Below, piece by piece: positions 150 through 34,860 of a stretch of DNA of 46,672 nt; positions within the stretch are counted from its first letter, which is position 1; every line of letters starts with the position of its first letter. The stretch spans positions 2,716,000-2,762,671 of the forward strand of contig BFEA01000023.1 of assembly GCA_003427395.1 (NCBI GenBank), in the 5' to 3' direction. Under the pieces are notes generated by a model. The model searched no databases, was not told where the DNA came from, and worked only from the letters and a program-made list of their open reading frames with translations. Both the position numbers and the translations under genes were made by a program. Source of the DNA: Chara braunii (lineage: Eukaryota > Plantae > Charophyceae).

Positions 150-1057
150 CATGAGACTAGCCAGGAGACAAGCGTATCATGCACACAGGCGATCCACACT
201 CCTTTTACCACGGAGCAGAAATGGCCTCTTCCTTTTCTTGAGAAGGATGGCGCTGTTGCGATTAGAAACGGATGGGCGGTAGAGGGGGAGGGGCGGGGGG
301 GAACGGGGATGTGAAGGAAAGAAACGGGAGGAACGGGAGTGTTTCGAGGGGGGTTAACAACGGTGGACAGTAGAATTGTGTTCTTAGGTAACAAGCTTTG
401 ACGTCATGACGCACCAATACCTTTGTGGGTCTGCAAGATTGGGTTAGCAGCCAGCAGGTGGATAGTAGGGCAGGTGGAATCTGAATGGAGGAGGAACAGA
501 CGAAGGATATTGGCTGATGGTCATCAAACAGCCAGCAGGTGCATGGCAGGGCGGATGGACAAGGAACGAATGGAAGACAGACGACGGACATTGGCTGAAT
601 GGCCATCAAAAAGACACCAAGTGCATATCAGGGCGTATGCAATACGACCGCAGCACAAAATGTGGACATTGGCTGATTAGTCATCATTCAACCCCCATAA
701 TCCCCCCCCTCCCCCCCCTCTTTTTCCCCAAAACCATCCTCCTCCCTTCGCTGCGAGAGAATGTCTCGAGGCGTTCGACGGACAGGAAAAAAGTACTTTA
801 CAGCGTCCCCCTGTAGCCCCACGCGATTGGGACACAAAAAAAAAAAGAAAAAAAAAAACATGACTGAGCCTACGACACGGATGTCGTCGCAAAACCAACC
901 TTGCGCGCTCCGTCAACTTTCCACGCCAAGCTTGTTTTGAAATGAAATTGATGTTTTGAAAATAAATAAATAAATTTAAAAAAAAAAATCTACGCCACCC
1001 CCACTAAAACCCTCGTCCAACTCGGAAACTGAAAACAAAGCCACAGGCGAGAGGAGG

Positions 1058-3089: not shown

Positions 3090-4174
3090 GGCGAGGGACA
3101 GGATCTTACACTACTAGTAATTCATATCAATATAGTCATTCTTAAGGCTAAATCGTCTGTAGAGCCCGGGGGGGGGAATGGGGGCAAAGGAGCGCAATCC
3201 TATCTTAAACCACCAGTTCATTGCCCACCCAACTTGAGAATGACGAGTCGAGCCGATTTCCCAGAAGCGTGCAGCTCCTCACCAACGGAACGGCGCCATC
3301 TAACAGCCTCTCCTCTGACATGGTGGTGCTCTTATCACCCCGCGAGAGACTTGGAGGAAGGCAAACGAGACGTTTCTAAAAGGAGGCCGGGGGGTGAGAG
3401 GGGGGGGGCGGGGGGGGAAGAAAAAAAAATCGGAGGCTCGGGGCAACCGGACCGAAATGGCTGGCGGCGGCAGCCAAAGCTAAAAAAGAAAGCCGCGCTG
3501 GCGTCTCGGGAAAAACTTGCACGCAGTGGGAATCCGCCTCGTACAAATGAAGGTCGGATGTACTGGTGGTTTAATTATAGATTCACATTCATTCATCAGT
3601 TTAATATCTGATCTGTGGTCCATCGGGCCACACGATATTAAATTATTTTTTCAGGGCTACGGAGGGGTCATAGGGGTAGGCTTGCCTACTCGACCCTTCC
3701 ACCTTTGCCTTCGTATTGCACTGCAGCGGAGCGTCGCGCGGCCCATTTAAAAAAAAAAAATAAAAAAAAAATAAAAAAAAAAAATCCTCCGTAGAGTGGG
3801 GCTACAATCTTCACCTTCAGTTTCAAGACATTTCTCTTCCCATGAGATGTATGTATGTGGGTTGGGACATTTACACCTTGCAATGCATTTACTTGGTCCA
3901 AAACCTGAACTCAGTACATGGTTTACATAATTAGTTACTAAATTACTGATGACGACAAATTATCTGTACCGATAAAAGAACGACTACCTAGCGTCAATAA
4001 TGATGAATTGCCTGTAAAGACGGAACCGATCCATTTTTTATTTTCTATCTCGCTGTGTACTAAGGAGTTAATAGACATTAGTTGTATAATAGTAACACGA
4101 TAATAATGTATCTATTAGGTTCCCTTTTGACTCCCCGAGCAACATCCCACGCTTCAGAGATCACTTGCCTCGAT

Positions 4175-4649: not shown

Positions 4650-5485
4650 AACAAGACGCCACGTCATTGTGTATATTTCAACAAGACGCCACGTCATTAT
4701 ATATATCTCAACAGTTCGTGGGTGTTGTACCAACTGCGCTAGGCTCGTTGGTTCCACTCATCCTTTTCAGTCTTGCAACAAGACGCCACGTCATTGTATA
4801 TATCGTCACACCGTGTATCGGAGCGCGAAGGCGAAAAAAGACAAAACAAAAAAGGAAAGTAAAGCTCCCCCTGTTCATCACCTCTTACGTACACGGCCGG
4901 CCACGTGGATGATATATATCGTCACAAGCATATCAGAGCGCAAAAGCGAAAAAAAGAAAAAGAAAGAAAGAAGGAAAACAGGGAAAAATGAATAAAATGA
5001 ATTCATGATTTAATCTTCTTCCTTATAACTCCCCCTGTTCAGAACCTCTTCCGTACAAGGTCCGCCCACGTGGATGTAGGTTGAGCGGCGGCTGCCCCCA
5101 CCCCCGTGTGTCATATCGACCCACTTGCACACAGCCAGAATATATATATATATATATCGTCACAAACAGAACTGCCCGATAAAACCGTAGGCAGAGAGAG
5201 AGAAGAGGACAACAAACGAGGGGCCGTGACAAACTGTTTCGTCGGAGTTTCACCGACTCATATATATATATATATATATTGTCGCAAGAATATCAGAGCG
5301 CAAATGCGAAAAAAAGAAGAAAAGAAGAAAGAAAAACAGGAAAAAATGAATTCAGTTTTTTATCTTCTTCCTTATAACTCCCCCTGTTCAGAACCTCTTG
5401 CGTACAAGGCCGCCCACGTGGATGTCGGTTGAGCGGCGGCTGCCCCCACCCCCGTGTGTCATATCGACCCACTTGCACACAGCCA
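4650..5485. repeat. Intronic tandem-repeat block: 30-bp GCCACGTCA units, plus ~210-bp units that start after (AT)n
   Basis: aacaagacgccacgtcatt at ~4650, 4680 and 4777. Longer unit (atatatcgtcacaag...tcagagcgcaaa...ccccctgttcagaacc...ccacgtggatgt...cacttgcacacagcca) at ~4911-5137 and ~5275-5485, with a degenerate copy at ~4797-4910. Confidence 0.85.
5226..5261 (-). ncRNA. Truncated hammerhead ribozyme remnant (AUGA + stem II + GAAA; CUG and stem I lost)
   Basis: Minus: ATGA GTCGG TGAAACT CCGAC GAAA CAGTTTGTCAC. Nearly identical to the core at 34253-34311, but (TA)n stands where CUG and stem I should be. Confidence 0.7.
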
Positions 5486-6309
5486 AAAGGCAAAGAGGCA
5501 AAGAAAAGAGGAAGGGAACAGCCAAATAAAAACAGATCCCAGATGACACGTCCCACATGCAAGCACCGCCCCTGCCCACAGGCCAAACGACGGGACAAGA
5601 CCAACCAGGATGTCAAGCATTCTTGTCTGCAAATAAAAAATAAAATAAAAAACGGAGGACCGGTATAGAAAACAATCCCGGATGACGATTCCCATTAACA
5701 ACTTTCTTTTGCCCCCCTTCGCCCCTCGGGCACCTGTTTCCTGCACCCTGCTTCCCCTTACCCCCTTCTTCCACTCGACCTACCCTTCTAATTCCATTCA
5801 GTTTGCTCTTCTCGCTCTTCCACGTGTCAGGTTCGGTAATTCCCGTGTCTACTTTCCCCATCCAGCCATGTGTTCTGTTTACAAAACCTTCCTGGCGCAT
5901 CTCAACAGACCCGCCTCCGCGATAAAGAAGTGAGGGGCATCGGAACACGCGCGCAATATTGACGGTCTGAAAAAGCAGCTCCTTCGCATTGGGTGCGTGA
6001 TTGCTAATTTATTTGCGGGGAAGAGAACACTGCTAGTCTCTTCCCCGCCAATGAATGCACCTATGGATGGAGCTCGTGAAATGGTCAGTCGTCGATAGTC
6101 GACCAATTGATTGATCACTTGCCCCGCCTTGTCCTTCCCGACCATCGGCCTCTCCATAACATGCGAGCGCCACCCCCCCCCCTCCCCCGATCTGTGAGCA
6201 ATTCGTCCACAAGTCATCCATACAGTACTCCATAACTGGTTAACTACTTGCTGGTCAACTTCTTCGAGTCCTCGCTGACACTCTTCGTCATTCCCCCCCC
6301 CTCTCCCCC

Positions 6310-6529: not shown

Positions 6530-6725
6530 CGCGCGCGCAACACGCAACTCGGCGTACGGGGAGCAAAATCGAGCCAACGTCGGTCCCGATACCTACTTGA
6601 TGACGGGATTTAGAATTGATATCCTCTGATCAAAGAATCGTGATCCCGAACGTCAAGTGAGACGACAGTGAAGCGACGAAATGAAACGTAAAAGGAAAGC
6701 ACGTGGGAAGGACGACAAGACGCAC

Positions 6726-7271
6726 CTTATTTAGCAAGAAGTTCGGGTAGAGCTGATCGTGTGTGAGGAATTGCAAGCACGCCGGGCAGTTGCGTTTATT
6801 CCTCAGGTGGGTAGTGATGCACGTGTAACAGAAGCTGTGACCACACGCCGTCAAGAACGCGTCCTTCATCGTGGACATGCATATCGGGCACAGAAAATCC
6901 TTATCTACTGGTGTTCCACCCGCCCACGCGCCCGTCATCAGCATTCTCGTGGGTGAGATACCAGTACCCCCCCCTCCTCGTCTATTCCTCTCGCTCTCCT
7001 CTCCATAACATTCCGTGGTCATCAGCTCTGTCTTCACACAAGACAGAGAGGGCACTTGCGTTGGCGTTTGGGTGGGCGCCAGCAGTGACCCGTCGCTACA
7101 ATTCGTCGTCATTGATGAAGACAACACGAACGACGACGGGGATCCCGACTGCTGCACTCGGCCGCGACGGCGACGGCCCAGTGGGAAAAGCTGGCGCGGA
7201 AGAATCTTGACGCTTGACGAATGAGGGGAAAGGGAGCTGCCGCCTCCTCCGCCAGCCTCCGAGCTCCCCAT
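6726..7271 (-). CDS. COP1: COP1 E3 ubiquitin ligase, coding exon 1 (N-terminal extension plus C3HC4 RING finger); rest of gene outside the window
   Basis: Translation ...VKTE...PVDKDFLCPICMSTMKDAFLTACGHSFCYTCITTHLRNKRNCPACLQFLTHDQLYPNFLLNK closely matches the plant COP1 RING region (DKDLLCPICM..KDAFLTACGHSFCY.CI.THL.NK..CP.C...L...QLYPNFLL.K). The match ends at AAG|GTGCG, a phase-0 donor at 6726/6725. First in-frame ATG is 7271; a downstream Met (MTTNCS) is an alternative start. Confidence 0.92.
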
Positions 7272-7306
7272 CACCGATAGCGTAGGCCGGCAACACTGCA
7301 GGCCAT
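7271..7306 (-). other. uORF (MACSVAGLRYR*) whose stop overlaps the COP1 ATG (TGATG)
   Basis: Minus strand reads gctATG GCC TGC AGT GTT GCC GGC CTA CGC TAT CGG TGA tg. The A of TGA (7271) is the A of the COP1 ATG. Context is -3 G, +4 G. Confidence 0.5.
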
Positions 7307-7349
7307 AGCGAAGTGCTCGGAGACAGAAGCGCAGGCTCCCAATCAATCA

Positions 7350-9150: not shown

Positions 9151-10061
9151 AGGACTCTCGCTCGCTCTGCATATAGGCGGGCGAGGGCTGATTCCTCAAA
9201 TAACCCTCCGCAAGTTGACCACACCCTCACGCCGCCGTGAGCCTCAAGAAGAGGCCGCCTCTCAGTGGCCCAGGCTAAACGTTGTCAGGGCCGGCCCTCC
9301 TCTCATGAAGTGGCCAGAAAATGCAGGACTATCTTGGCCTCGCCACACCACCTGGGGGCCCGCACCGTTGAACCTCGTTCATGGTTTCTTTTGAGACCCT
9401 GGACGCGGAAGGTCAGGGCTAACTGGAGGAGAAGCAGACCGAACCATTAGCAGCACAACGGATTGTAGAACAATAGAGCCGCTCTCAAATTGAGGCCTCG
9501 AAAAAGGTTTCAAGACCAAAAAAAAGGTTTTGGGCGGAGGGGCGACGTTAGCGCGACTGCGCTACCTGGGTGCCTGCCCTCGATGTACTACCAGGAACGG
9601 GTTCGTAACTATCGAGGGTTAGGGCTTTGGTGGCGGCGTGGCTTGGGAACACTGTCCAACCCTGGGTATTCCCGAGGGATGGCGGAGCGTTCCTCCTTCT
9701 CACCTAGCGGTTAGCAGGTGTGTGCTCACTGTGAAATATCAGTGGCCAGAGGGATCTCCGACGGTTTGGTCTGTCTGCTGTTTGCTACAATCTCGGCTCG
9801 CGTCTCCGTAGTAAGAGATATTTGGGCAAGGGAAAGGCCTTATGCTGTTGAAGAGAAGATAATGAAGAGAGCTGCAGACTGGGGACAGTATGCTGAAGAC
9901 GCCTTCACGGGTCAACTTATGGTATAACATCTCCTGGCTCTCACCTGGGGGGAGGGGGTGGTGTTTTCCTATGAATTGATTGGAGGCTCCGATAAATTAT
10001 TATTCTATTATTTTTAGCCCTAGTTAGGTTTTGACTGAAAGCGTTGTAAGATTATAAGCAA

Positions 10062-12491
10062 ATGGCGACTGAAAAGTCGCCTTCATCTCCTCCACAGTTA
10101 GATAAACAGCGCATACGCGAAATTCTGACCAAGTGCTATATAGATGGGATCCTCCCACCCCGTCTGGCACCGTCCAAAGTGGAAATCGGGGATGACTACA
10201 TGAGAGTATCCATCAACCAGGATCTATACAAGATCCAGGTTGAATGGTTGCGAGAACACGCTCTTACGATCCTTTTTGGTGATGGGTCCACGACGATCCC
10301 CACGGACATTAAAAAACGCCTCGTACGGATCTATGAGAATGGTTGGGCCTCCTCGAGCCAACTGACCTCTCCACCGAAAAGGGGCTTGTTTCACAACGAA
10401 GGAATGAACCTAGTTACGTATGTAGCTCCTTCAAAGGAAGTTGCAGAGTGGATGCTTCCTGTGTCTACTACGCATATCGAACTCGATAACATTTTGTATT
10501 CGGTCTCTTTTCAACCATGGAAGACCGAACAGGAATTGTGGGAATGGAGGGAGGTAGCCAGGCATCGCTTTTTCTGGATACGTTGTCAACAAGTGCCTGT
10601 GGGAGCTCTTCCTTTCCTACCCGGAGCTATTCGAGATGCTTATGGGTGCGACCTTTTAAAGGAGTACCCTGCGTTCAAAGATAAATTGTGTCCTGCGTTG
10701 ATGAACATCCGCTTTGACCTGGAGTCTGCAGCCAGACTGCGGTACAAAAAATATTTGATTATTGATTTGGGAGACGATGGTTATGTAGAGATTGAAGTGG
10801 TGTGCGCTGATACCCCATGGTGTCCGACTTGCATACAACACTTTCACACGCGTAATAAGAAATCCTTTGCCTCGGCGATAAAAGCAAAAGGGAAAGAGAA
10901 GAATCGGAAGGGGGAAAAATGAGGCAAAGGAGCCAAAGGGGACAAGAAAGCTGACGCAGAGAAAAGGGGGAAGCAAAACAATTCAAAGGACGAACAAACG
11001 GAGAAAGAGAAAGAGGAGGAAGGAAAGGAGAAAGGTACAAGTGAAGAAGGCTCGAAAAGGGAAAAGGTCGGGGGTGACGAGAGGAAGAAAGAAAAGGGTT
11101 TTCCATAAGTCAAGGAGAAGACGACAGATAAGGGTCAGGAAGAGAAGGAGGAGGACAGGGGTCGAAGGGCAGATAAAGATAAATGGGATGTAGTAGACAA
11201 GGAAGTCCCAAGTGGAAATGGCGGAACGCTGGGGGGACAGGGGGTAGAGCATGATGGAGAGAAGATGGAGGAGGACGTTGTCCCTCTTACAAAAGAGAAA
11301 AGAAAGAGATGTAACTCGGAAAGAGATCCCGACGAAGAAGAAGGTCTCCCGAGCTTTGTTGTACATGGCAATGAGTTAGTGATCCACAAGGATCACTCCC
11401 CCTCCCCTTCCTGGGAACGGGAAGAGGAGGAAGAAGAATCTAGTGCGATCAAGATATACGATAATGATATGTATAACTCACATCAATCTGATGACGGTTC
11501 GGATTCGGACCTAGACTTGAAGTCCTTATATGCACCCGATCGGCCTGTAGCCCACCCATCGGAGGGAAATTCAAAATTGTTTTCGCCCTCAGATGGAGAG
11601 GACTTCCGATCGGTGGGAAGCTCCTATAAATGGACTCCGACAGGGACACCAGCACGAGTAGAGAGCCCTCCAAAGGAGAAGTTCCCTCACCCACCTGAGA
11701 AAACACCGAGTATCTCCCCTGCTAAGAAGCAAAAGGCTTCAAAAAAACAAACGGGGAATCTGCTGACAAAAGACAAACCTGGCCAGCTAGTCAAAGTGAG
11801 ACGCCCGGTGAAACAGACCCTAGATTTCGCCAAGCCGATGCAAACGATATCGAGGGAAGATAAAAGGAGAGCACAGATCAAAGAATTTCTCGTGCCCTTG
11901 ATAGTTACACCTTCGGTTCGTGGCCCTATGGTCCTGACGAATATGGATCGGGACGAGCGTTTATCTATTTCCGCCCTTCCAGTGAAAGGATCTCTCCCAG
12001 ATGACCAGTGCATTGATCTGGTCACAAGAGACGTGCTTGGTCGCCATGGAGTTTGCTCTATGGTCCCAGTACCGAGGAGAGGTCGCCATGTGGTGACCAA
12101 TCCAACTGGCGGGAAGATATTGTTGCATATAGCAGTCTTGTGCTTGCATGCGGAAGGATTCGACATGGAGCAATTGCGTATGTAGAGCATTTATTGGTTG
12201 CCTCTCTTTCGCCTTCTGGACACTGATTCAGATGGTCTGAGAGATATTTCATTACCTGAAGCCCTTTTCGCTCAGGATGTGGCTGATTGGGTAGTGCAAA
12301 CAGATGCGGCAGACTCCTTCTCATCGAAATCCTTTGCCATTCACTTGAATACCAAAAAGCTCATGGTTCCGATGGGACAAAAAGAACCGAGCAACAAAGA
12401 CACAAGTCTAACTAGTCTGGCACGAAAACTGTCTACGGGCCGTATCCAAAACCCCCGGGGCAAGGGCGTAGACAATGGTTCTACCAAGTAG
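10062..12491 (+). pseudogene. LINE-A ORF1 (N-terminal domain, partial CCHC knuckle, charged linker, conserved C-terminal domain), interrupted
   Basis: Aligns by eye with LINE-B ORF1 (RIREILTKCYIDG/RVRESISQCYDEG; YENGW/YEDGW; YVAPSKEVAEW/YVAKAKEIADW; TPWCPTCIQHFH/TDWCRRCRWYYH). Several internal stops. Confidence 0.85.
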
Positions 12492-15400
12492 AATCAGGGT
12501 CTTAACCTGGAATGTCAGAGGTTTTGGAGACACAGCCAAAAAGTCTTAAAAAGCTAGATTTAAAGTCTGGTTTCATAAAGAAAACATCCAAATAGCCTGT
12601 ATTCAGGAAACGAAATTGAATTATGACAAGCTGCGGGATATCCATCGCTGGTGGGACGGACCTCAGATATGGTCCCCTGCAGTAGGGTCAAAGGGGGGCG
12701 TTGCAATTTTGGTATCTAAGGATCTATAGATATTGACGTCATTGATTCCTATGCTGACCACGAGGGCCGGTGGGCCTGGCTGGAATTTACTATCAAAGAC
12801 GAGGATTGGGCGGTTATGACAGTATATGCCCCAGTGCATTACGGTGACAGAATTGCTTTCTTTGATAATTTGATTACGAAGACTCCGGATGTGGAAAATT
12901 TGATTATCACTGGGGATTGGAACACAGCTCTAAACCCAGGTTTGGACACAGTGCGTTCAACCCCGCTTAGGGCTAATTCACTCAGATTATCCTCCTTTTG
13001 TCAAACACAAAGTCTGACTGACGTGTACAGGGTCTTTAATCCTCTGGCAAATGGATACACGTGGTTTGGGACCCCCCAAACTCTCATACTTCGGGCCCGA
13101 TGAAAAGGCTAGACTTCTTTCTTGTTCAGGGCACTCCTTGGGATAGGAGTACATGGTGTGACGTGATTCCGGCTTCTGTGTCTGATCACCACCCCGTGGT
13201 ACTAGACATCATTTCCAGAGAAATACTGGACCGACACAGGCCCCCATTGAGGCTTAACATTAATCTTCTGAAGGACCCAGGAATTCTCCGTTGGGTCCAA
13301 ACCCATATGGAGAAATGGGGAGAGGCTAAGGACCTATTCCGGGCTCTCCTGGAGTGGGCGGACACAGGTATAGCCATCATTAGGCACGGTCTGATCACCT
13401 TCTCGATAATGAAGGCGACAAGGAGAAACTGGAAAGAAAGCACATTGCTCCAATCAATAACTCAAGCTGAGGCGGGGATGGGTAATGACCCCTTCTCTGA
13501 TTATTATTGGGCTAAAATCAGAAGCGAGGCTTTGGCTCAATTGGAGGATTTGGAAATACAAAAACAAACAAAATGGACAGAATTTCTGCAATTGAGGAAT
13601 ATTATAGGCTATAATAAGATGACTAAGATGACTTTTCGTACATTGTTAATTAGGCAAAGTCACTCGCCTATTAGGGAATTTTTACATCCATTTGATAAGT
13701 CAGCCCCTCCTGCATTGGATACAGTCCAGATGTGCCCATATGCGTTAGAATATTTTAGAGACATTGTCTCCACTAAACGGCCGTTAGATCACCCCCAACT
13801 AGATCTCTCTGAAAACTCTACCTTTTGGGACCAATCTCAGTATGCCATCTCTAGAGCGTTGGCTGAAGAACTGGACAGACCCATAGAGGAACTAGAACTC
13901 CTTAAGGCAGCCAAAGCCATGGCCAAGGGCAAATATCCTGGCCTGGATGGCCTTCCCATATAATTTTTTTAATCTACCTGGGGGGTCTGGGCTCCCTTCC
14001 TTTGCGAAATTTACAATCAGGCACGTACGACAGGGAAGCTCCCCAAGGGGTTTACCCAAGGGATGATCTCCTTGTTATATAAAAAAGGGGATGAACGCGA
14101 AGTTAAAAACTGGCGTCTTATTTCGGTCTTAAATGTTACATATAAGCTGATGGCTAAAACTTTGGCGTTACGATTGGCCGAACTCCTCCCAAGCCTGATT
14201 GGAATGGAACAGGGGGCTTTTGTTAAAGGTCGGTTTATATTCGATAATATTTTGTCTACGATTCAAACCCTAGAAATCATGGATAAAGAGAAAAGGGATG
14301 TGGCCATCCTTCTCCTTGATATGGAGAAGGCGTATGACAAAGTTGGATGGTGTTTTGTTCACACCACTCTAAGAAAAATGGGGTTTGGCCCAACATTCCG
14401 TACATGGGTCAGTGCAAGTTATGAACAAGCTTCTTCCATGGTGATTGTGAATGGCAGACTTTCAGAGGAATTCAAATTAACACGGTCCCTGAGACAGGGC
14501 TGTCTTTTAGCTCCGCTTCTGTTCGTTTTACAATTAGAAGTTCTGTTAGCAAATATTAGGCGTAATCCTGCTGTGTCAGGTCTAAAACTATCCCATGGTT
14601 TATAATAGAAGGGGGGTGCTTTAGCTGACGACCTAACTGTCGCCTGCGAAAACAATCCGACTGCATTGAATGAATTGAAACTTATTATTGACTCTTATTG
14701 TAACTTATCGAAAACCTCCATCAATTGGGAAAAATCGGTTTATTTTCTCCCCCCTCCCCAGGTGTTGAGTGTGGACTGGGGCCCCAAGCAGATACCTACA
14801 GAGGTGTCAGATCGTTTCCTTGGAGTTCAGGTCTCTCTGTCAGATTGCTCTGAACACCAAGATGTAATTTTGGCGGATAAAGTTTCTGCCCGCATTGCAG
14901 GGTGGGCTCATAACTTCAAATTGGCCCTGTTTGGCAGGGTTTCGGTTTTAACTGCGGCAGCCCTTTCAGTTTTGTGGTTTCCTTTATATGTCCATCGGCT
15001 GAGTAAACGAGCTTATAATCAAATTAAGAGGGATGTGGCACACTTTCTTTGGAAGCCCAGTGCATCAACTCAACAAAGATTTATCTGGAAGGTTGCATGG
15101 GATTCAGTGGCGTGCTCCAGAACCCAAGGGGGTCTGGGTATACTGGACCCAGTCCAACAGAACCTGGTTCTCCTATCAAAATAGATTATTGCAGCAGCAT
15201 TTGGTTTCAGAACCAAACTCTGGTTCAATTAGCAGAATATTTGCTTATGAAGGAATGGTCCCTGAGAGAACGGAGGATGTATGGACCTGCTGCTTTATTC
15301 AGTCTTACACACTTCGCAGACCCAGGATTTGGCACACCATTCTGAGAAATTGTTCCCTCAAGTTTGGCTCCCCCTTCTACAAGAAGAAAAGTCCTTAAAT

Positions 15401-16695
15401 CAAATTATCTTTGAAAATGAGTACATTAAGACACACGAAGGGTTGACCTATAAGGCAGATGGGACTACGGGCTCTTTTGTGAAAGCCTGGATTAAGAAAG
15501 GGGTGATTCAAATCGAAGATATTTGGGACGAAGAGGCAGAATCGTAGCTGTCACCTGCTCACCTTAGACTCAAGTTCCCTCGTCTGCGAAATGTAGAGGC
15601 TAACTACAGACAAATACTATCTAGCATCCCTACTTATTGGCTGAATCTCCTCCCACGCTCAGTGGAGTATGTAGCAGGTTCCTGGGTTCGGGACCCTGGG
15701 TTAGTTCTGAAATATTGAGGATAATTGGTCCAGAGATCCCCCATGGGATAAAGGTTCAGGTTTGGAAACGATGTTTTAGTTCTGTGCTCCCGGGTAAGTT
15801 GGGTTTTGTGGAAGAGTGTGTGATTGACACTTCAATAGGTCTCCTTGAATGCAGGGTACAGAGAGGCAGTCCAGTAGGAAAGGAAAAGACTGTGCTGATT
15901 TCAGATGATGCCTCTCAACTGAAGATTGAACCTCTACTGTGCGGGTGGAAGGGAATCATGGGGCCAGACTCCTTTACACCAGTAATAAACTACTCAACTA
16001 AAATCAGAGTCCAAGTTCAGAGATCCACAGTGGTAAAACAACTGGTGGTTACGACATCAGAAAGATTATCTAAGGAGTCGGGTTTCTCATTGGGTGATGT
16101 AGACCTTTTTGCTTTGTGGAAAGGTCTAAAATCTTTGACTTGTCAAAAGCATGCCAGCCTTTTATGGTTACAATCTCTGCTAGCGATACCCTCTGTTACC
16201 TGGTTGAACTCTAAAGGAATGGACATCAATACTAAGTGTGCTCGCTGTCAGTGGGGATGGGAGACAGCGGCCCATGTGTGGATGTACTGCCCATATTCCC
16301 TGCAAGTTTGGGAGTGGTGGAAAGAACGGTGGAAGGATATGGCTGGTGAACAGTTCTTATGGAGCCAAGATTGGTTTATATATGGTCTGGCCCAGGCGGG
16401 CTCAGACTTCTCTTCTGGTTGGCCTTACGTGGCCCTAACCTGCAGAGGAGTGGTTATGGAAGCCCTGTGGAAATTGTGCAACGAAGCAACATTCAAGTCG
16501 AAACCTCATAATTTCCATAGCCAGAAAGTTGTCGTTCTGTCCTCATTGAAACAGATAATCCGATGTGGCTGGTACAACTCCATCAGACACCCCCGAAAAG
16601 GGCGTATCTGGTTTGCACAAACATGGGGCAAATGTACTAATGCCATATCAATTTCTCCGGACTGAAAGCTCGTGTTCAAAAATTGGTCCTTATAA
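12475..16695 (+). pseudogene. LINE-A ORF2 (APE endonuclease, reverse transcriptase, zf-RVT), multiple stops and frameshifts
   Basis: EN motifs TWNVRG, IQETK, GDWN, RLDFFL, SDH; RT motifs PGLDG, LLDMEKAYDKV, LRQGC, LADD; C-terminal CARC...ETAAHVWMYC. Confidence 0.93.
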
Positions 16696-17009
16696 GAGTC
16701 GCGGGTCGGTGTTAGATCGTCTTAGATCGTCAGAGCTTACAAGCAAGGCGCTTTAGCCCTGAGTTCAATAACTGTTTAGTTTGCCTGGTCATGTATTTGA
16801 TGAAATTACAAGTAGAATCTCTTTAGATGTTTGTTTTATAGATGTAGTTTCAATTTTGGTAGATAAAAGAGATTTGGCATTGAATTTGGTATATTTCTAG
16901 TTTGGATGGAAGATTTCTTTGTTTCGGGTTTCGTTCTGGTTCCAAGAGAAGCGAATCTGGGTAAAGCTCCCAGAGGAATTGCTGTAGAGTTTGATATTTG
17001 GGTAGGATT

Positions 17010-17092
17010 AGTTTCTTAGGCGAATGACTTTAAGCTAAACTGGCTGATGCTGCCAGGATAACACCGGGTAGAATTGTGAGGTCCCCGGCCTC
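17010..17092 (+). ncRNA. Conserved structured 3'-UTR motif, LINE-A copy
   Basis: 67/84 columns identical (hand alignment) to 26444-26526; hairpins CTGGC-tgatgct-GCCAG and GAGGT-ccccg-GCCTC. Confidence 0.6.
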
Positions 17093-17322
17093 GTTTGCTT
17101 TTGGAGAAATATAACGGAAGGGGCTTAAAAAAAAATAAAAAAAAAAATAAAAAAATAAAAAAAATTGAAGCCTTCTATTTGCCAGAGCTGCCTCACCGAA
17201 GGTTCAGAGGTTCGAAGGCAGAGCACATACCATTGTTGTTTATTTATACTGTGGGATCCTGCTACTGCGTAAGTTATTTAGTTATTGCTTCCAGACTACT
17301 GTCGTAGGTGAGCCTTAGATAA

Positions 17323-17387
17323 TTGGTGCTGGAGAATATTATTTTTTATTTATTTATTTTTTTATTTTTTTGGTGCTGGAGAATATT
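17323..17387 (-). mobile_element. Solo poly(A) retro-insertion with 18-bp TSD
   Basis: TTGGTGCTGGAGAATATT at 17323-17340 and 17370-17387 flanks a 29-bp T-rich tract (17341-17369). Confidence 0.75.
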
Positions 17388-18470
17388 GTTATAGCTAAGC
17401 CAATGTTGTTGGCGGAAAAAAGATGGAGGTCAATGCATTGTCGGAAAGGGACGAGCGGCGTTAGCGGGCGGGTAGCGTTAGCGCTCCGCTGACGGCCGTC
17501 GCCGAACGCGAATAGCGCGTTGGGCGCTACCAGGGCGCTTCTCCCGCCGTCGTGACGGGAAACGGTGAACGCGCTGCGCTCTTCCTCTTCGGGAGAGGGG
17601 CTTTGCCTGTACGAGGTGTCGTCCCCTTGGTAGTCTTAGGGCAGGAGTAGGGTAGGAAGTTACTGGCGATGGAGAATGTTTTGTGTGGTGTTTTCAAAAT
17701 TTAATCTCCAGCTATCGTTGAAGGAGGGGTAATAGAACTTCAGTCCAAGATCAGTATACCCGGGACTCATACAGGGTAGCGGGTGGAAGCTGGCAATGGT
17801 CACAACCCAGTGGTGAAATACGATGGAATTGGGCAGTTGTTACTGTTGATGGTGAATGCTCCCAGCGATGCTCGCAGAGTGTACATATCTGCGGTCATCG
17901 AGAGGGGGAAAAGGGATCGCTTGTCTTCTGTTTTGCTGGATGTTACACACAAATATGGGTGGATGCGGGGAGTATTTGGCGTCCAGGAGAAACATCTGGA
18001 GTGTAGTTTGCCTTACCGCCCTTCCTCGGATAAGGTAAATCGTTCGAGTTATCCGAGGTCACCAATTTTACCAGGTGGCGAGGCAACATTTAGCTTTTTC
18101 GACTTTGTGGCTCGAGATCGAAACTGAAGGCTGTTCTTACTGGTATACAGATAGGGTACAGGGCGGCACTCTGAAGGGCAAAGTGGACAGGCGACGGAGA
18201 GTTGTGATTCAGTTGGAGCTGACGGCGAATTATCACCGGGTTCATAGTAAGTTCTCGAATTCTGTGCACAAGTTTTGACACGATTGTACTCTAGGCTTCG
18301 CCGACCGGGATTGGGAGCCAGGGACTAGGTGTCTAACGGGGAAAGACGGTGTGATACATAATTCGTGTTGGATCGTTGGCCAGGTTAAGAGGGTTGGATA
18401 GGTTAAACATCGGGGGTGTATCGGACTGGTCCGAGGAGGATTGCCTGTCCGCCTATGAGGGCTGATGATT

Positions 18471-18764
18471 ACGGAGGTCAGAGATAGTAAGGCACTTCGT
18501 GAACATTGGCCTGGTAATTGTTGGGCTATGTTTTGCTTCAAATCTTGCAGTTTCGAACGATTCAGCAGTTAAGATTGTTTTGGCGTGGCTTTGAAGGTGG
18601 CCCCTTGGAGTAAGAACACGGAAGTCGGAGATAATAAGGCACTTCGTAAACATTCGCTTGGAAATTGTTAGGATATGTTATGCTTTAAATCTTGCAGATT
18701 CGAACGATTCAACAGTTAAGTTTGTTTTGGCGTGGCTTTGAAGGTGGCACCTTGGATTAAGAAC
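18471..18764 (+). repeat. 147-bp tandem duplication in the LINE-B 5' region
   Basis: acgga.gtc.gagata.taaggcacttcgt...ggctttgaaggtggc.ccttgga.taagaac at 18471-18617 and 18618-18764. Confidence 0.92.
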
Positions 18765-19184
18765 AATCATACACGCATCATCAGTAGATGTGGACCCGAA
18801 TTTGGTTGGTTAACGCTTATTCCCTACGCAGATAGAGATTGGGTCCTGCCTCGTCGGTTACTCGGTAACAATTTGTCCGAGTTAGTTGCAGTCCTGGTGT
18901 TCCCTCCCGACTAGCAAAGAATCGGTTTAGCTGGCGATCTCGGAAGCGTAGGTAGGATCTGAACTGGAGTTTCCCGTCTGCAATAGTAAACAGGGTGTCG
19001 GGGAGAGAGCGGGACAATTTGTACACTTAAGGGTCATGCACAGTGAGTCATTGTCCAGTGCCGGCAGGTCCGGTCAAAGTCCGAGATCAATTCTGTTCAA
19101 ATAGTGGCCAGTTCTACCTAAGCTCTCACCTCCCATCAAACGCAAAAGGCAATCTTCAGGTGTGCTCCGAGGGCAAGGGCGGCA

Positions 19185-21877
19185 ATGGAAGGGGTCCCGA
19201 GAGCGGGGCAGTCCCAGCAGCGTCCGGTCCCCATGACTATTGACGAAAACCGGTCCAGGGTACGCGAATCTATTAGCCAATGCTATGACGAAGGGGTATG
19301 CCCAGACGACCTATGTGTAGGCGAGGTGGTGGAAGATGGGGAAGGGAAGAGGTTTGTAGTAAACAAGATGGTCAACGAGGTGAAAGATCAGTTCCTGAAG
19401 GAGCGTTCGGTCCTAGTAATTTTCTAGGGGGAGGCTCGCAACCTCACCAGACAAGTTAAGGAGGACCTGATACGGGCATACGAAGATGGGTGGACAGCGA
19501 AGAGGCTGTTCGAACCAGGTGCTAGGAAGGGCCGGGTGAAATTCGAAGGCACTAATGTCGCTTCGTACGTTGCAAAAGCCAAGGAAATCGCAGACTGGCT
19601 ACTGCAGGAAGGGGAACTGAAGATCAAATTGGAACAGAAGGAGTACTCAGTCCTCTTCAAACCACGATTATCCAAGTTGGAGATGCAGAGCGCCCGTATA
19701 CAAGAGGCAGCCATGAAGTTTTGGATAATGGCGCTGAGAGTACCGCTGAAAGCGTACTACTATCTGTTGAGCGCAGTCAAGGGAATCTTTGGAGAAGTCC
19801 TTGCAGTGCAGAGCCCAAAGTATGACAGGGATTGGCCGAAACTGATGAACGTGAAGTTCGACATTCCGTCAGATGCGCGGTACCTCATAGATGATGAACT
19901 GGTAATTGAATCTCCAGGAGGTGAAAGGTGGAAAGTAAAGATAGTATCTCCCTACACTGATTGGTGTCGAAGATGTAGGTGGTACTACCATACGAAGGAG
20001 AACTGCCCACGACGGCGGAACGACGAAGCTCGAAAGGTAAACGGAGCCCGACAGGGGGGTCACAGAGCGTGGTTTCAAGAGCTGGTCCTGAGTCAGGTCA
20101 GACCAGATAGGGAGGAAGGGGGAGGAGGAGAGGAGAGAGCCCGGCCCCAGGAGCCAGCCTCGCATTCTTTTGCAGCGCAAGGTGAGCTCAAACGCACGTC
20201 TGAACAGAGCTCACATCCAGTTCGCCAAGATACACATGGACAGCGAAGCTGGAATGCAGCTCCGGTCACGCAGCAGCCACATGGCCGGGGGGATCCTTCA
20301 CGAGAGTTCAGCAACAGAGATCTTCCAGGTGGCGCGTCAGGGGGGTACCAGCCCCCCCCCCGAGGGGGGGAAGACGGGTGTTGGCATCAGAACCTGTCCG
20401 GTCAGGGCTCGGAGCCCCAGAGGTCTCTTCCTGAGTGGAACAGGGAGCAAGTTTGGAGAAATGAACCGGTCAAGGGCCCAGGTCCGTCGCTTCTACCCCC
20501 CGGCAACCAAGAGAAGATTGGGCAGGTGGTAGGGGTCTCCCGCACAGGGAATTGCCCATGGAACGCTGTACTTATAGTCTGAACAGGCAGGATTTTCCCC
20601 TCCTGTATGGGCTTCCGGAAGAGGAAATATTCTATAAGCAGCAGCAGTACCAGCCTCAGCCAATCCACCAACGAAGCGAAGTGTATGAGGTGGGCCAGTG
20701 CCTGGTAGAGCAGCCGCAACCAGGATATCCGTCTGATAGCTACGACTGGAGACACCTGGCACCTCCTCGGCCGGACAGATGCTCTCAACATCATGAAGGG
20801 GCTAGGTGGGAAGGAGGCGGAGCCGTATTCAGACGTAGACAAAGCAGCTCATCCTCGCGTTGGTCCTCGTGGAAGGAGGAGAATTGGAGGCAGAAAGGAA
20901 CCGGTAACGGACCCTGGAGACAAGGGCAAAGTCACCCATTCTCACCAGTAAGAGAGGAGGAAGATGTGGCTCAAGGGGGCGGAGGGGGTGAAGGAGGAGG
21001 AGGAGGGGTAGATCCGGGTAGTCTTCAACCAGATATATCTCGACTGAGGGACGAATTATCGAAGACGTCGGTCACCTCACGGTCAAGAGTGAGGTGGGGC
21101 AGTGAATGTGAGGAAGACCTCGAAAGGACAGGAAGACCGAACTCAGCCTCTTTGCTGGACAACTCAGCTGGGTCGGGTCACAAACAAGAGGTCGAGGCAC
21201 AAAAAGGTTCAGTTAGAATTAGGAGAGCAGAGGCAGTGGGTAGAAACTAGATGGAATCAATGCAGAGGCGGTTAGTACCCCTGCTATGCACACACACAGA
21301 CAGGGGTGTATTCTTCCTGGCAACAGCAGATGGTAATGGACCTTTCCTCCCTTCGGCAGAGGTGGACTGCTCCCCTACTCCGACGAAAATCCTCGAATAT
21401 ACGAGAAGGTTATATGGTGAACACGTGTCAGTCAAAATCATTCCACATTCTACGATGGCTAGCATTATTTGTGAGACTGTAGAGGGGTATAGGAAAATGT
21501 ATTTTCCATTACTAGACGCTCGCATACCAGCAGAATCTGTCGAGGTCCTGGCGCAAGCTGGGTTTCTTTGGTACCACAACAGTCTGATCCAAGTGGACCA
21601 GGCTAATGAGTTGGATTCCATTAGGATCCTTCCGGGGGTGTCCGCTGCGGCACTGATAACAGTTAACGAGAAGCTGCTCCAGGAGGAGGATTTCCATTCA
21701 GAATTTCTAAGAGCCAGTCTGACTGAGGAATGGTGTTCAGTGTCTCATACCAGCTCCTCCAGAGGAAGCTCGAGGATCCAGAACTCGAGAAACTCCTTGC
21801 GTAGGCAAGCACAGTCCGTTGCTCAGGGTTCAATCCGCATCCAAGCGAACGCGGTGACAGATGGCACTAATGGATAG
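19185..21877 (+). pseudogene. LINE-B ORF1 (CCHC knuckle WCRRCRWYYHTKENC, disordered linker, C-terminal domain)
   Basis: In-frame TAG at 19425 and 21248, frameshift near 20550; homologous to LINE-A ORF1. Confidence 0.87.
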
Positions 21878-24800
21878 GCTGAGAATGATAACTTGGAACT
21901 TTTTGGGCCTTGGGGATTCCAATGGGAGGGATAAGAGGAGAAGGTTGAAGTCTTGGCTACACGCTGTGTGATGTTGCAGGAAACAAAGTTGAACAAGACG
22001 AAGATCAAGGAAATTGCTCATTGGTGGGAGGGCCCACAGATTTGGGCGCCAGCGCAGGGAACAAGGGGCGGGGTTTGTATTCTGTTGCACCGTGACCTGC
22101 AAGCAACGGTGATGGATGCAGAATCAGACATTTGGGGGAAGTGGGCCTGGATAAAGATCTTAATAGCAAACGAGGAATGACTCTTTATGACGGTGTACAC
22201 ACCAACAGACGTGGGGGAGAGAACGAGGTTTTTCTCGAAACTGGTGACGAATATCCCACCTGCAGAGAAGCTGATTATAGGGGGGGACTGGAACGTGTCC
22301 TTGGACGAAGCTTTGAGGAGTGGTTCTTCATGTGCAGATAGGAGCGACGTGAAGGCACTTTTGGAACTGTGCTGGGATCTGGAAGTGGTGGACCCATTCC
22401 CAATGCTGAATCCGGGTGAACCTGGTTTTACCTGGTTCTCCAACCTCTTCAGGAACAGACAGACAATAACCAGGAGGAGATTGGACTTCTTCTTGATGGG
22501 GGAAGTTATTCAGAATCGCTGTACATCGGTCAAACTGGGTTGCAGTCCCCTTTCGGACCACAAGTCGGTTACTGCAGGTATCCGCCTGTCAATAGATGGC
22601 TCCAGGGGGAGAGGCTTCTTCCGCCTTAACAGCCAGGTGCTTGAAGATCCTGGAGTGAACGAGTGGGTCTCCAGACACATGCAGAGTTGGGAGCATGCGC
22701 GGGGTCACTTTGAGTCTACCGCAGAGTGGATGGATGGTGGCTTAGCCATTACATCAGGCATACTCGACGTCATCTCCAGAATACTGGCAAGAGAAAGGAA
22801 CAAGAAGGAGGCGGGGTGCAAGCGGAGAGTGGAAGACGCGGAGGAGAGGTTGGACGGTCATCCCATTTCAGTGATGATGTGGGCAAAAGAAAGGGAAACT
22901 TAAGACGCATGAAGGAATGGGATATGCTGCAAGAGGAAAAACAGAAAAGGTGGAATGATATCTTGAAGGTAAAGAGTATTGAGTTTAACGACAAGATGAC
23001 CAAGGAGACCTTTCGAAATCTGCAACCGCGCAGTGCCGAACTGCAAATGGTAGAGCTTAGGCACCCGTTCGATGCCACAACCCCCTCAGCCTGTTCAGCC
23101 TCAGGCATGTTGCAGTACGCTAGGCTATACTACAAGGATATTCTGACCACCAGGCGCACGCAAGGCAACAGGACCAAGGATCTGACAGAGGAATCGGACA
23201 TGTGGAGGGACACTAGGGTAAAGCTGCAAGTTACAGGGAGGCTGAACCTGGATCGTCCACTCACACTGGAGGAGACAACACAAACATTGAAGACAATGGC
23301 GAAAGGGAAATCCCCCGGGGTGGATGGCCTCTCGGTAGAATTTTACTCCGCCAATTGGGACGCGCTGGGACCCAAGCTAGTCGACTTGTACAATGAGGTA
23401 CTAACAGGGGCAAAGTTGGGCAAGGGGATGTCACATGGGGTTATTTCGGTTCTATTCAAGAAGGGCGACAAGGCTGAAGTCAGGAACTGGCGGCCAATTT
23501 CGCTGCTTAACGTGTCATACAAGATCCTTGCAAAATCGCTGGCGCGCAGACTTGCACAATACCTACCGGAGTTAGTGGAAGGGGATCAGGGCGCCTTTGT
23601 GAGGGGAAGATCAATCTTCAACAATATCGTGACGGCGATTGAGGTGTTGGAAGTAGTGCAAAGTGAAGGGATGGATATGGCGGTCCTTCTCCTAGACTTG
23701 GAGAAGGCGTATGATAAAGTGGGTTGGGCTTTCGTCCTCACTACGCTGAAGTGGATGGGGTTCAGAGAAGGATTCTGTGCATGGACCAAAGCCTTATACA
23801 CCTTTTCCACCTCGGCAGTCATGATCAATGGGCATCTGTCTGAACCCTTCGCTCTCTCAAGGTCTCTACGACAGGGCTGCCCGCTGGCTCCGCTCGTGTT
23901 TGTGCTGCAGTTGGAAGTTCTGATGAACAGGCTGCGAAGGCACCCGGACATCAGGGGCCTCCAACTGCACACGGGGGTGGAGTGTAAGGTCAAGGCGCTG
24001 GCAGACGACCTGCTGAGCATCAGTGAGAACACGGAAATATCCTTGGGAGCAATCAAATCAGTGCTGACCGAGTACTCTACGTTGTCCGAAGCAACAGTGA
24101 ATTGGAGCAAATCCACGTTCCTGCTCCCAACACAATTTGGTTTGAAGGTTGAATGGGGAATGAGAAGGGTAGGTGTAGGGGAGGAGGAAAGATTTTTGGG
24201 TGTGTTAATCAGTTTGCAAGTGGATGGGTTGGGCCAGGGTCTAATTTTGCAGCAGCAGATTTTCGCCAAACTGAGACTGTGGAACTTCACTGGGCACCTA
24301 TCAGTGGTAGGGAGAGCTCTAGTGGCCAATGTGGCCTTGTTCTCAATCATGTGGTTTGTTTCCACAGTAAAGGAGTTGGCCGAAGGAACAGTCAAAGTTG
24401 TCAAGAGATTGGTTGTCCGGTTCGTTTGGAACACACTCACCTTCCCACGTGTACAGGGCGGACTGGGTCTGCTAGACCCAGCAAGAAGAAGCCAGGCACA
24501 ACTGAGGAACTGGGTGGTAAAGGTGGCTACTATGAGAAGCACTGAACACTGGGTCACCTTAGCGGAGAGACTATCGATGAAGCAATGGGAGCTAAGTAGG
24601 CCGCAAGATGTCTGGGCCTGCTTCTTCATTCCGTCTTTTCGGAAGAAAAAACTCAAATCTGAATTTTGGGAACCTATCCGTAAGGCATGGCACCGTTGTC
24701 CCCCAGATGTGCAGAAACCCCCGTCCTCCAAAGAAGAGGTCCTGAACCAGCTGTTGTTTGAAAACCCGGCGTTCACAGACCCCTCCGGCGTGAAATTCTT

Positions 24801-26091
24801 GGCAGACGGCTCGACGGGCTCATTCGGTAGAGCTTGGGTAAAGAAGGGGGTTGTCAGGATTGCGGATCTCTGATCATCCTTGCTGGGTAGCTGGAAACCG
24901 TTGAGCGAGGTAAAAGCAGTTCTCAGAGGTTTGCAAGGGGTAGAGGTTCATTGGAGGGCACTGATTGACGCTGTCCCCCAAGAATGGAAGGACATTTTGG
25001 GTCCAGAGGGTTCAGACCCCGCTGGTACCTGGTATGTCCCACAGCTAGAGAGGGAAGAAGATTCTGTACTCTGGAAGATGCTGGAGATCCTCCCGAGCGA
25101 TTTCAGAAGGATAGAGAGGTGGAAATGCGAGGGCCCTGAGAACACGCTGTCCCCGATGGGAGAAGTCACTGTTCAGCTCTGGGATAATCCTGCACAGGCT
25201 CGAGTGGTGGAGGTGCGCAGCAGGTCGCCCTCGGCCCCCATTCTGACTTGGGTAGGCAGGAAACCCCTCAAGCTGCTCAGCATTGACCCGACAGCCTGGA
25301 CATGGGCGCCCAAGGCCCCATAGGAGGTGGCCCTAGTCATGCACAAATACTCGGTGGCTGCAGGATACAAACAGTAGAGACAGAAACTCAAGTCGCCTGT
25401 GGAAGTGGCGATCCCCCGTTGGCTGGCAGTGTGCGAAGAGGACCTGTCGGAGTCAAAGTCTGAGTTTGAAAGACTATGGAGCATCCTGTCCTCCCTCCCA
25501 AACGGTAAACAAGTAAGTATTGTGTGGCTGCTCTCGTTAATGGTGACCCCGTCAGCAGTCTGGCTAACCAGCAGAGGTTTGAAGGTGGACCTTGCTTGCA
25601 CAAGTTGCAGATGGCCCTTCGAGTCCACCAAGCACCTATGGTGGGAGTGCCCCGCTTCGAAGAGGATATGGAATTGGTGGGCTCATCACTGGAGAGAGTT
25701 TGGTGGCCAATGTGTGGAATGGACAGAAAAGTGGGTACTCTTGGGGTTCCTACCGAAGAACGTTAAGGGCCATCAGGGTTGGGGTTACGTGGCGCACGTA
25801 GTCAGGGGCCTGATCTGTGAGACGATCTGGATGGACAGGAACAGATCACGGTTCGAAAAACGGCCCCTTTCTGATTTGGAGACCAAGCGCTACATTAAAC
25901 AAGGGTTGAGGCATGCGATTTGGGTGGACTGGAGGCGGAAGGCAAAGTCCGGGACAGGGAGCAGACGCCAACTATTTTGGTTCCTCCGTACCTGGGCGAA
26001 GAACAACAAGTTGGCGACAATACACTCTTAGAAAGGTCTGGTGATCTCGAAGTGGCTCCTAGATGTCCCATCTGCAACTGTTAACAAATAG
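21861..26091 (+). pseudogene. LINE-B ORF2 (APE endonuclease, RT, zf-RVT), few stops and frameshifts
   Basis: ITWN, LQETK, GDWN, RLDFFL, SDH; GKSPGVDG, NWRPISLLN, QGAFVRGR, LLDLEKAYDKV, LRQGCPLAP, LADD; CTSC...ESTKHLWWEC. Confidence 0.95.
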
Positions 26092-26443
26092 GGAGGGTGG
26101 CATTGGAGGGGATACGGTTTAGTTAGTAGTCCTTCTCTTTACCAGGGCACTCGGTACGTAAGGTCGCGGTGGACCGGTAGGAGAGTGCCAGTAGTCTTGG
26201 ACGAGCTCCTCTGGGCCGTTGTAGTCCCAGACTAGTTGTTCTGGTGTTAATATCAGTCAAGAAGCTCAGTGTGAGAGGGTTGGTAACGAGCCAAGATATT
26301 CTACAGACTTTTGAAGGGACGAGAGTAAATTATTAGTAATTCTGAAAGTGCATAGGAAGCTAGTTTTTTCCACTTCAGGCTTGGTTCAGCTGTTGTAGGT
26401 TATGCTGTCAACATGATAGGTATTGGAAAGTTTATAGTATGAG

Positions 26444-26526
26444 AGTTTCTGCAGGCGTAAGCCTGTAAGCTAAGCTGGCTGATGCTGTCAGATACTCCCG
26501 AGTTGAATTGTGAGGTTCCCCACCTC
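26444..26526 (+). ncRNA. Conserved structured 3'-UTR motif, LINE-B copy
   Basis: Hairpins GCAGGC-gtaa-GCCTGT (GNRA loop), CTGGC-tgatgct-GTCAG and GAGGT-tcccc-ACCTC; lies ~23 nt before the poly(A). Confidence 0.6.
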
Positions 26527-33727: not shown

Positions 33728-33765
33728 CTGTCTCTTATACACATCTAGATGTGTATAAGAGACAG
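33728..33765. other. Nextera mate-pair junction adapter (two Tn5 mosaic ends) - assembly artefact
   Basis: Exact CTGTCTCTTATACACATCT + AGATGTGTATAAGAGACAG. Confidence 0.98.
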
Positions 33766-34860
33766 GCGTTCGTCAGTATTCCGACCTTGCTGTACTACTC
33801 TCCAAATATGCAAAATGAGACTGAATTCACTGCTAGAACATGGAAAGATACATAACCATTTTTATTTTTATTTTTTTCTTGTAGGGGAGGATAGTCGACC
33901 ATCATCCCAACGCATCTGCCCAGCAATCGGGCAACATATGACTGTTGTTATCTGTCTCTTTGTCTCTCTCTCTAACACACACATACATACATGCGCACAC
34001 ACTCACACCCACACCCACACCCCCGCCCCCCCCCACACACATTGTCAAACAAACAAACAAAATAAGCACACACATACGCACATTCCAACGTAGCGCTTTG
34101 GAATGTGCGTTCGTCAGTATTCTGGTCTTGCTGTACTAGTCTCCAAATATGCAAAATGAGACTGAATTCACTGCTAGAACATGGAAAGGTACATAACCAT
34201 TTTTATTTTTATTTTTTTCTCGTAGAGATTAGTGCAGTGATGTGTGTGAGCCACGGACCGTTTCGTCGGACTTTCACCGACTCATCAGGAGGTTGAACCC
34301 CAACAGTCTGCCCATGATGCGTTAGACTGATGGACAAGGACTAAGTGTGTGTGTATAGGCATCGCTCCTCTGCTGTCCACATGACGGAGGGGAAAAAATC
34401 ATGGTGGTGTATCTTTCTATGTTTTAGTGAAAGATTCAGGGCCTCGCTTCACTACTCTCCAAATGTGCAACATGAGAACGAACCTTCCATTACAACATGA
34501 AAAGATACACAACCATATTTTTTTATCTTTTATGCATGCGGAGAGTAGTGTAGCGAGGCCCTCAATGTCGTTTTGCAAACGTAGAGAGTAGTGTAGGGAG
34601 CCTCTTTGTATGTGTGTATGTGTGTGTTTGTGTGTGTGTGTATGTGTGTGCGCTTGCATGTGTAGGCCTCGCTCCACTACTATCCATATGCAGAACGGAA
34701 AAAAATCAAGGCGGTGTATTTTTCCATGTTTGATCCACTACTGTCCACATGCGGGAGGGAAAAAAATCATGGTGGTGTATCTTTTCATGTTCTGGTGAAA
34801 GATTCATTCATCATTTTATATATGTTGAGAGTAGTGTAGCGAGCCACTGAGTGTGTGTGT
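33766..34860. repeat. Complex repeat block (direct and inverted modules with CA/GT microsatellites)
   Basis: ~115-bp direct repeat 33766-33880 / 34107-34222; atcatggtggtgtatctt module at ~34398 and ~34766; inverted repeat 34438-34460 / 34540-34562; hairpin 34076-34110. Confidence 0.75.
34253..34311 (-). ncRNA. Type III hammerhead ribozyme
   Basis: Minus: gcaGACTGT-T-GGGG ttcaa CCTC-CTGATGA-GTCGG tgaaagt CCGAC-GAA-ACGGTCcgt. Full core (CUGAUGA, GAAA, GUU triplet) and all three stems pair. Confidence 0.88.

Follow-up and report, generated by a model that had tools for sequence, protein, structure and literature searches.

A decayed type III hammerhead ribozyme fragment in the Chara braunii genome and its probable origin from a Penelope-like (Chlamys-type) retroelement

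The closest described counterparts of the locus reported here come from the same species. The Chlamys-2 element of Chara braunii has a canonical hammerhead ribozyme in its 3' part, and canonical hammerheads are also found in a third, nuclease-less C. braunii type (Craig et al. 2021, PMC8557442). Insertion of Chlamys elements is directed to (CA)n and (C)n; the elements are frequently 5'-truncated, form tandem or inverted insertions and include non-autonomous members whose 3' ends are in common with those of the autonomous ones; the role of hammerheads for Penelope-like elements was left open in that study (PMC8557442). The plant LTR retrozymes are non-autonomous retroelements with a type III hammerhead (PMC4918200). 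The animal non-LTR retrozymes are short non-coding hammerhead retroposons that depend on the reverse transcriptase (RT) of another element and are characterized by type I hammerheads, tandem arrays of 170-400 nt and circular RNAs (PMC7229834). According to one proposal, they derive from Penelope-like pseudo-LTRs as non-autonomous elements (bioRxiv 10.64898/2026.07.22.740005).

The analysed stretch of C. braunii DNA (46.7 kb, hereafter the window) carries a complete type III hammerhead motif within a family-homologous fragment at 34242-34344 on the minus strand. The best reading of this fragment is a decayed copy of a Penelope-like (Chlamys-type) hammerhead retroelement or of a non-autonomous derivative. 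More specifically, with a probability of roughly 0.7, it is a truncated and mutated copy of a very abundant non-coding C. braunii retroelement that is copied by a Penelope-like (Chlamys-type) RT and bears a genuine type III hammerhead. The Penelope-like link is drawn from the insertion signature and the literature, not from sequence identity.

The motif lies at 34255-34309 (minus strand) and, according to the model alignment, the fold and a descriptor, is composed of three helices, of which I and II are capped by loops and III is open. It begins with the 5' strand of stem III (34310-34303), followed by the predicted cut at a GUU site between 34302 and 34301, stem I of the form GGGG(U)/(A)CCUC (34301-34297 and 34293-34289) and the core CUGAUGA (34288-34282). 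Next come the 5-bp stem II, GUCGG/CCGAC (34281-34277 and 34269-34265), with its 7-nt loop UGAAAGU (34276-34270), the GAAA element (34264-34261) and the 3' strand of stem III (34261-34254). Stem III pairs GACUGU with ACGGUC and can be extended to nine positions, one of them an A x C mismatch. The catalytic core is complete (C3 U4 G5 A6 N7 G8 A9 ... G12 A13 A14), the A15.1-U16.1 pair is formed by A34261 and U34303, and the NUH triplet rule is satisfied by GUU. GUU is a poorer hammerhead substrate than GUC. An earlier note on this DNA had described the same anatomy on minus-strand positions 34311-34253, and its stems, triplet, core, loops, GAAA and cut were all recovered as claimed.

An Infernal-type check with Rfam RF00008 (Hammerhead_3) upheld the class assignment, with an end-to-end alignment over all 54 model positions and a score of 45.0 bits (E 5.5e-9 in a 271-nt scan), which does not reach the gathering score of 48.5. 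Being 3.5 bits short, the hammerhead is missing from the whole-window gathering scan, which lists only a U2 spliceosomal snRNA. The lower score is due to the GUU site, two non-standard outer pairs of stem III and a weak stem I. Our own descriptor, which demands CUGAUGA and GAAA, four or more base pairs in each of stems I and II, five base pairs in stem III with a terminal U-A, and an H17 other than G, has its sole match in the window at 34257-34307(-) and gave none in 300 dinucleotide-preserving shuffles. Folding of the 59-mer gives the hammerhead as the minimum-free-energy (MFE) structure, and the hammerhead persists when the 103-nt element is folded. The model alignment, the shuffles and the folds thus establish that the type III hammerhead motif is genuine and not a chance match. 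A candidate inactivating hairpin, in which upstream CAUCAG (34332-34327) would pair with CUGAUG of the core, is absent from the 96-nt and 103-nt MFE folds and is not supported.

A chance match or an assembly artefact could be suspected from the score below the Rfam threshold, from a Nextera mate-pair junction adapter about 490 nt away (33728-33765) and from a stem II so close to the consensus that an unrelated phage-type hammerhead has it exactly. This explanation is already effectively refuted, and hardly any probability attaches to it, as it is contradicted not only by the shuffles but also by thousands of related contigs in independent runs, including an exact 113-nt contig that spans 34310-34422, and by homologous copies on other scaffolds.

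The extent of the family was studied by mapping two DNA runs and two oligo-dT RNA-seq runs of Chara braunii to 34130-34470 at a likeness of at least 80%. In the DNA runs 4883 and 4690 distinct contigs match this stretch, nearly all of them on the ribozyme core, with a peak at 34262-34297, and such numbers indicate a huge repeat family. Depth stays at the single-copy level in the unique flanks (34226-34249 and 34346-34393). On the 3' side the similarity ends abruptly at 34253-34260. On the 5' side the depth drops about 5-fold across the cleavage site and then declines upstream (200k, 30k, 6k and 1.6k) as far as 34342; the step at the cleavage site could partly reflect divergence between subfamilies rather than cDNA ends. 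Head-to-tail ribozyme copies are present in a few DNA contigs.

At 34302 the family majority is C (80%), at 34259 it is A (97%) and at 34255, where the depth is low, it is U (69%); the majority letter is C at 34271 and G at 34293. This majority corresponds to a GUC site together with a stem III that is Watson-Crick throughout, CAGACUGU/ACAGUCUG; both features recur in the copies at loci L008 and L006 described below. The copy at 34255-34309 departs from this majority by its GUU triplet, by a single U.G wobble and a single A x C mismatch in stem III, and by alterations in both loops. The earlier note had derived the triplet and the stem III defects from an ancestral sequence by transitions, mostly at CpG. 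The change of GUC to GUU at a CpG was confirmed by the majority C at 34302. The ancestral C at 34305 and G at 34309 were not confirmed, since most of the family has U and A, respectively, at these positions. In stem III this copy is changed on the 3' strand instead, by A to G at 34259 and U to C at 34255. In the per-position tables, which are unlinked, all stem changes are one-sided: U-A/U.G at 34305:34259, G.U/A-U at 34300:34290 and A-U/A x C at 34309:34255. No compensatory double changes could be scored from these tables and the five related copies, most of which are decayed.

The fragment at 34242-34344, placed by contig coverage and by alignment to the copy at L008, is about 100 nt long and belongs to subfamily i. 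It contains 35-40 nt upstream of the ribozyme, the ribozyme itself and a short GGCUCA.. tail whose alignment to the tail of the family is weak, and it is devoid of the family U-run and the 3' terminal part. The longest contig pieces from the DNA runs span 34253/6-34342 at 80-88% identity, and outside this interval the depth falls to single-copy. Other copies run on upstream of 34342, as seen in the loose-end consensus and at L008, so the copy is 5'-truncated. Directly 5' of the fragment stands a (CA)5 microsatellite (34345-34354, minus strand), likely the target or the tail of an earlier insertion; L006 has a junction of the same type, in which a truncated copy comes after (CA)n. Downstream, CACACACA may represent an element tail that has mutated, not a target microsatellite. 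The note's description of the ribozyme as intact is too strong in view of the GUU triplet, the two stem III positions that depart from the majority, the truncation of both ends and the silent flanks. At 848-895 (minus strand), GGCUCAGUCAUG followed by a U-run is a possible very short 3'-terminal fragment of subfamily i, matching the consensus of the family tail over 19 nt (E 5.6e-4); with low confidence it may be a third fragment of the hammerhead family.

Related copies were sought in 237.6 kb of Chara DNA, comprising the window and eight loci from GCA_003427395.1 that surround homologues of the window's LINE RT, and five related pieces were found. The piece at L008:21631-21810 is a longer relative of the window copy and aligns to 34342-34242 at 74.6%. 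It begins after (CT)n with about 35 additional nucleotides upstream; the site is GUC, the 9-bp stem III is perfect and the core is decayed. Downstream of the ribozyme the piece continues with GGCACA.., a U-run and the terminus AUGACAA(CA)n. The copy at L006 follows a (CA)n junction, and its truncation lies at another upstream point; it has a GUC site and an internally deleted core, and a further tail fragment ending in AUGACGU(CA)5 is placed head-to-tail before it. The best copy of subfamily ii is L005:14050-14167, in which (AT)n is followed by GGGUUCAACC, 1-2 nt past the cleavage site; this copy retains an intact core and intact stems I and II and terminates with UUUGACG(AT)n. Locus L007 has a tail only, and (TA)n connects this tail with another short repeat in inverted orientation.

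The remaining piece lies in the window itself, at 5158-5260 (minus strand), and was located by blastn and by its sequence. It is the second copy that the earlier note had reported 29 kb away; such a copy does exist (5233-5261, 27/29 identical), although it holds only the 3' half of the ribozyme. It is a member of subfamily ii, 94-95% identical to L005:14050-14167 and 5'-truncated inside the ribozyme core, with stem II, GAAAC and a tail of about 75 nt ending in GUGACG, and it is situated between (AT)n runs at 5261-5279 and 5141-5157. With only 13.4 bits in Rfam it is not a ribozyme. Among the copies read directly, both stem III strands and an intact core are combined only at 34255-34309. The Rfam scores are 45 bits for this copy and 26.9 for that at L005, with nothing listed for those at L006 and L008. 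An attempt to derive a permuted or tandem unit, in which the tail of subfamily ii would correspond to the region upstream of the site in the 34242-34344 copy, was abandoned, as its score was reached by 424 of 2000 shuffles.

The copies sampled are 100-180 nt long, and none of the five related ones contains a gag-like, GIY-YIG or RT ORF. Their junctions and tails are (CA)n, (AT)n, (CT)n or (GA)n, and their 5' ends, compared among the 34242-34344 and 5158-5260 copies and those at L005, L006 and L008, differ from one another. Together with the (CA)5 at the window copy, these junctions correspond to the microsatellite insertion described for Chlamys (PMC8557442), while 5' truncation with tandem or inverted partial copies is seen in the head-to-tail arrangement at L006, the inverted neighbour at L007 and the depth gradient. 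The family thus carries the signature of the Naiad/Chlamys description: variable 5' ends, microsatellite junctions, head-to-tail and inverted neighbours and no poly(A). In comparison with Chlamys-2_cBra and the EN-less PLE-X of the same species (PMC8557442), the resemblance includes a canonical hammerhead near the element 3' end, high copy number, (CA)n-type junctions, 5' truncation and tandem or inverted neighbours; the differences are the lack of the three kinds of ORF and the small length of the copies. This likeness was drawn from the published description of these elements, not from their ribozyme sequences. No Penelope-like ORF is present in the window, where the RTs are LINE-type, or among the ORFs checked at L003 and L007, which are host genes: the large gene at L003 is MOV10-like and the 672-aa gene at L007 encodes a TPR protein. 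According to the earlier note, Penelope-like elements typically carry type I hammerheads, in contrast to the type III motif found here. The canonical hammerheads of the C. braunii Chlamys elements (PMC8557442) run counter to this, and the contrast is consequently no bar to a Penelope-like origin.

Under the Penelope-like (Chlamys-type) interpretation, the family RNA would be copied by an RT of this type into simple-sequence repeats. The hammerhead near the end of the RNA would cut the transcript and so trim the template, with the result that many copies would start at or just after the cleavage site. The copy at 34242-34344 keeps about 40 nt upstream of the site and was thus presumably made from RNA that had not been cut, or from read-through RNA. 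It would then have landed beside (CA)n and lost its 3' tail, and later drift may have turned GUC into GUU by CpG deamination and introduced one wobble and one mismatch into stem III. The depth step at the cleavage site makes it testable whether the ribozyme sets the 5' end of the template.

The topology of the ribozyme is that of the plant LTR retrozymes (PMC4918200), with which the family also has in common the green lineage and the nature of a non-autonomous retroelement. An origin as a plant-type LTR retrozyme, or as its solo LTR, is nevertheless highly improbable. No direct repeat with a second hammerhead was found, there being one complete motif per 46.7 kb, and none of the flanking direct repeats around 34242-34344 carries a ribozyme; the segment common to the family is about 100 nt in length as against LTRs of about 350 nt, and the copies have microsatellite junctions and are 5'-truncated at many different points. 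The absence of LTRs and paired ribozymes, the far shorter length and the non-LTR insertion signature set the family apart from these retrozymes.

The animal non-LTR retrozymes (PMC7229834) are similar to the Chara family in being short, non-coding and dependent on the RT of another element, and the same logic is proposed for both, namely that the ribozyme processes the element RNA. Unlike them, the Chara family is of type III, and its copies are mostly solitary or form short piles at microsatellites. The 34242-34344 locus, with its solitary copy, is not an animal-type tandem retrozyme. An independent, undescribed, non-autonomous retrozyme-like family, propagated via self-cleaved and possibly circular RNA and not derived from Penelope, would agree with the short, ORF-less and extremely abundant copies, with the head-to-tail ribozyme copies in a few DNA contigs and with the fact that Craig et al. 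2021 describes no short hammerhead elements in Chara. Such an origin is considered unlikely, because the insertion signature (microsatellites, 5' truncation, tandem or inverted neighbours) fits the published Chlamys/Naiad description, hammerhead-bearing Chlamys elements exist in the C. braunii genome and the window copy is solitary. Circular junctions were likewise not seen in the RNA reads, although the mapped stretch, 34130-34470, could not capture them.

The earlier note had suggested an undescribed family of non-autonomous ribozyme-bearing repeats in an algal genome. The short, ORF-less, very abundant and algal character of the family was borne out, and the word undescribed has to be given up for the kind of element, which is already known in the form of the hammerhead-bearing Chlamys-type elements of C. 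braunii (PMC8557442). In a full-text search, Craig et al. 2021 was the only literature linking Chara braunii with the hammerhead, and for this reason the short ORF-less copies may be undescribed as such.

A broader proposition is given somewhat less than an even chance: the family may be the first green-lineage counterpart of the animal non-LTR retrozymes, with tens of thousands of self-cleaved mini-elements copied by a Chlamys-type RT into microsatellites via a UGACG-plus-microsatellite terminus. Self-cleavage would then set the 5' end of the RNA, and the 34242-34344 copy would be one dead member. If true, this would link the plant (type III) and animal (Penelope-associated) retrozymes. The family represents a very large type III hammerhead population of a streptophyte alga in a non-LTR, microsatellite-targeting context, and as such bears on the kinship of the plant LTR retrozymes with the animal Penelope-associated ones and on what hammerheads do for Penelope-like elements.

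Transcription was assessed in the two oligo-dT RNA-seq runs, in which 1716 and 4090 reads fall on the core. As many as 96% of the mapped reads continue into unlike sequence, and the unique flanks of the 34242-34344 copy are silent (depth 0-1.3); the reads on the core come from other loci, not from this copy. RNA ends are not piled up at the cleavage site in these oligo-dT runs, in which the locus is silent, and reads cross it. As stated in the earlier note, no LTR, RT or other ORF is found at the locus, and the single complete motif of the window leaves it without a partner ribozyme. The lack of a partner, of an ORF and of detectable transcription marks the copy as a relic. A functional ribozyme recruited by the host and acting in cis on a local transcript could be imagined from the intact catalytic core and from the hammerhead fold being the MFE fold. 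This role has very little probability in view of the silent flanks, a copy more degraded than the family consensus and repeat-dense surroundings with no ORF nearby. The relic has no evident role at its locus, might still cut weakly in the test tube, and does not warrant annotation as a functional ribozyme gene or a retrozyme.

Type III hammerheads were also detected in two metagenome contigs, Ga0114902_1000484 (L001:8190-8244, minus strand) and Ga0114903_1000585 (L002:3440-3494, plus strand), at 53.6 bits, above gathering. The contigs are near-identical and prokaryote- or phage-like, and the hammerhead is intergenic, between two coding regions. In stem II and its loop it matches the Chara family majority exactly, and elsewhere the two have nothing in common, so these core matches were rejected as relatives; on sequence comparison the likeness looks like convergence on the consensus, not homology. 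Since unrelated hammerheads have the exact stem II, the sequence of this stem alone is no proof of homology.

The surroundings of the ribozyme fragment are formed by a very high-copy repeat of about 120 nt (33766-33884, 34107-34225, 34423-34541 and inverted partners up to 34850), whose direct and inverted copies are interleaved with (CA)n/(TG)n. The part at 34130-34225 is too repetitive for read mapping, and at 34394-34470 the summed depth reaches 10-37 thousand. This repeat could be another microsatellite-targeting non-autonomous element. The adapter at 33728-33765 is a perfect 38-nt Nextera mate-pair junction adapter, with the Tn5 mosaic end followed by its reverse complement; it lies inside assembled sequence and abuts the repeat unit ending at 33766. 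The sequences on its two sides are therefore probably not contiguous in the real genome, which points to an assembly artefact that may also include the near-duplication of 33766-33884 and 34107-34225.

A further repeat of about 350 nt is present as 2.3 tandem units at 4850-5500 (minus strand) and also at L004:2271-2408, L005:17084-17178 and L007:22637-22799. Its units end with CUUGUGACG followed by (AT)n, a UGACG-plus-microsatellite terminus as in subfamily ii, and the 5158-5260 hammerhead copy is inserted at the (AT)n of one unit. Such a common 3' end would be consistent with a single reverse transcriptase serving several non-autonomous families.

The same hammerhead copy lies in an intron, upstream of which a RING-finger exon was recognized at 6630-7346 (minus strand). 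An exact-product look-up of one window ORF gave no match. Two LINE-type retroelements with RVT_1 and zf-RVT ORFs and many Chara braunii paralogues extend over 10000-26500 (plus strand); the RT ORF at 22726-24873 has homologues of 90-40% identity, nearly all of them CBR_g.. entries of Chara braunii. The U2 spliceosomal snRNA gene is located at 3577-3748 (plus strand; RF00004, 56 bits, above gathering) and is followed by an A-rich run.
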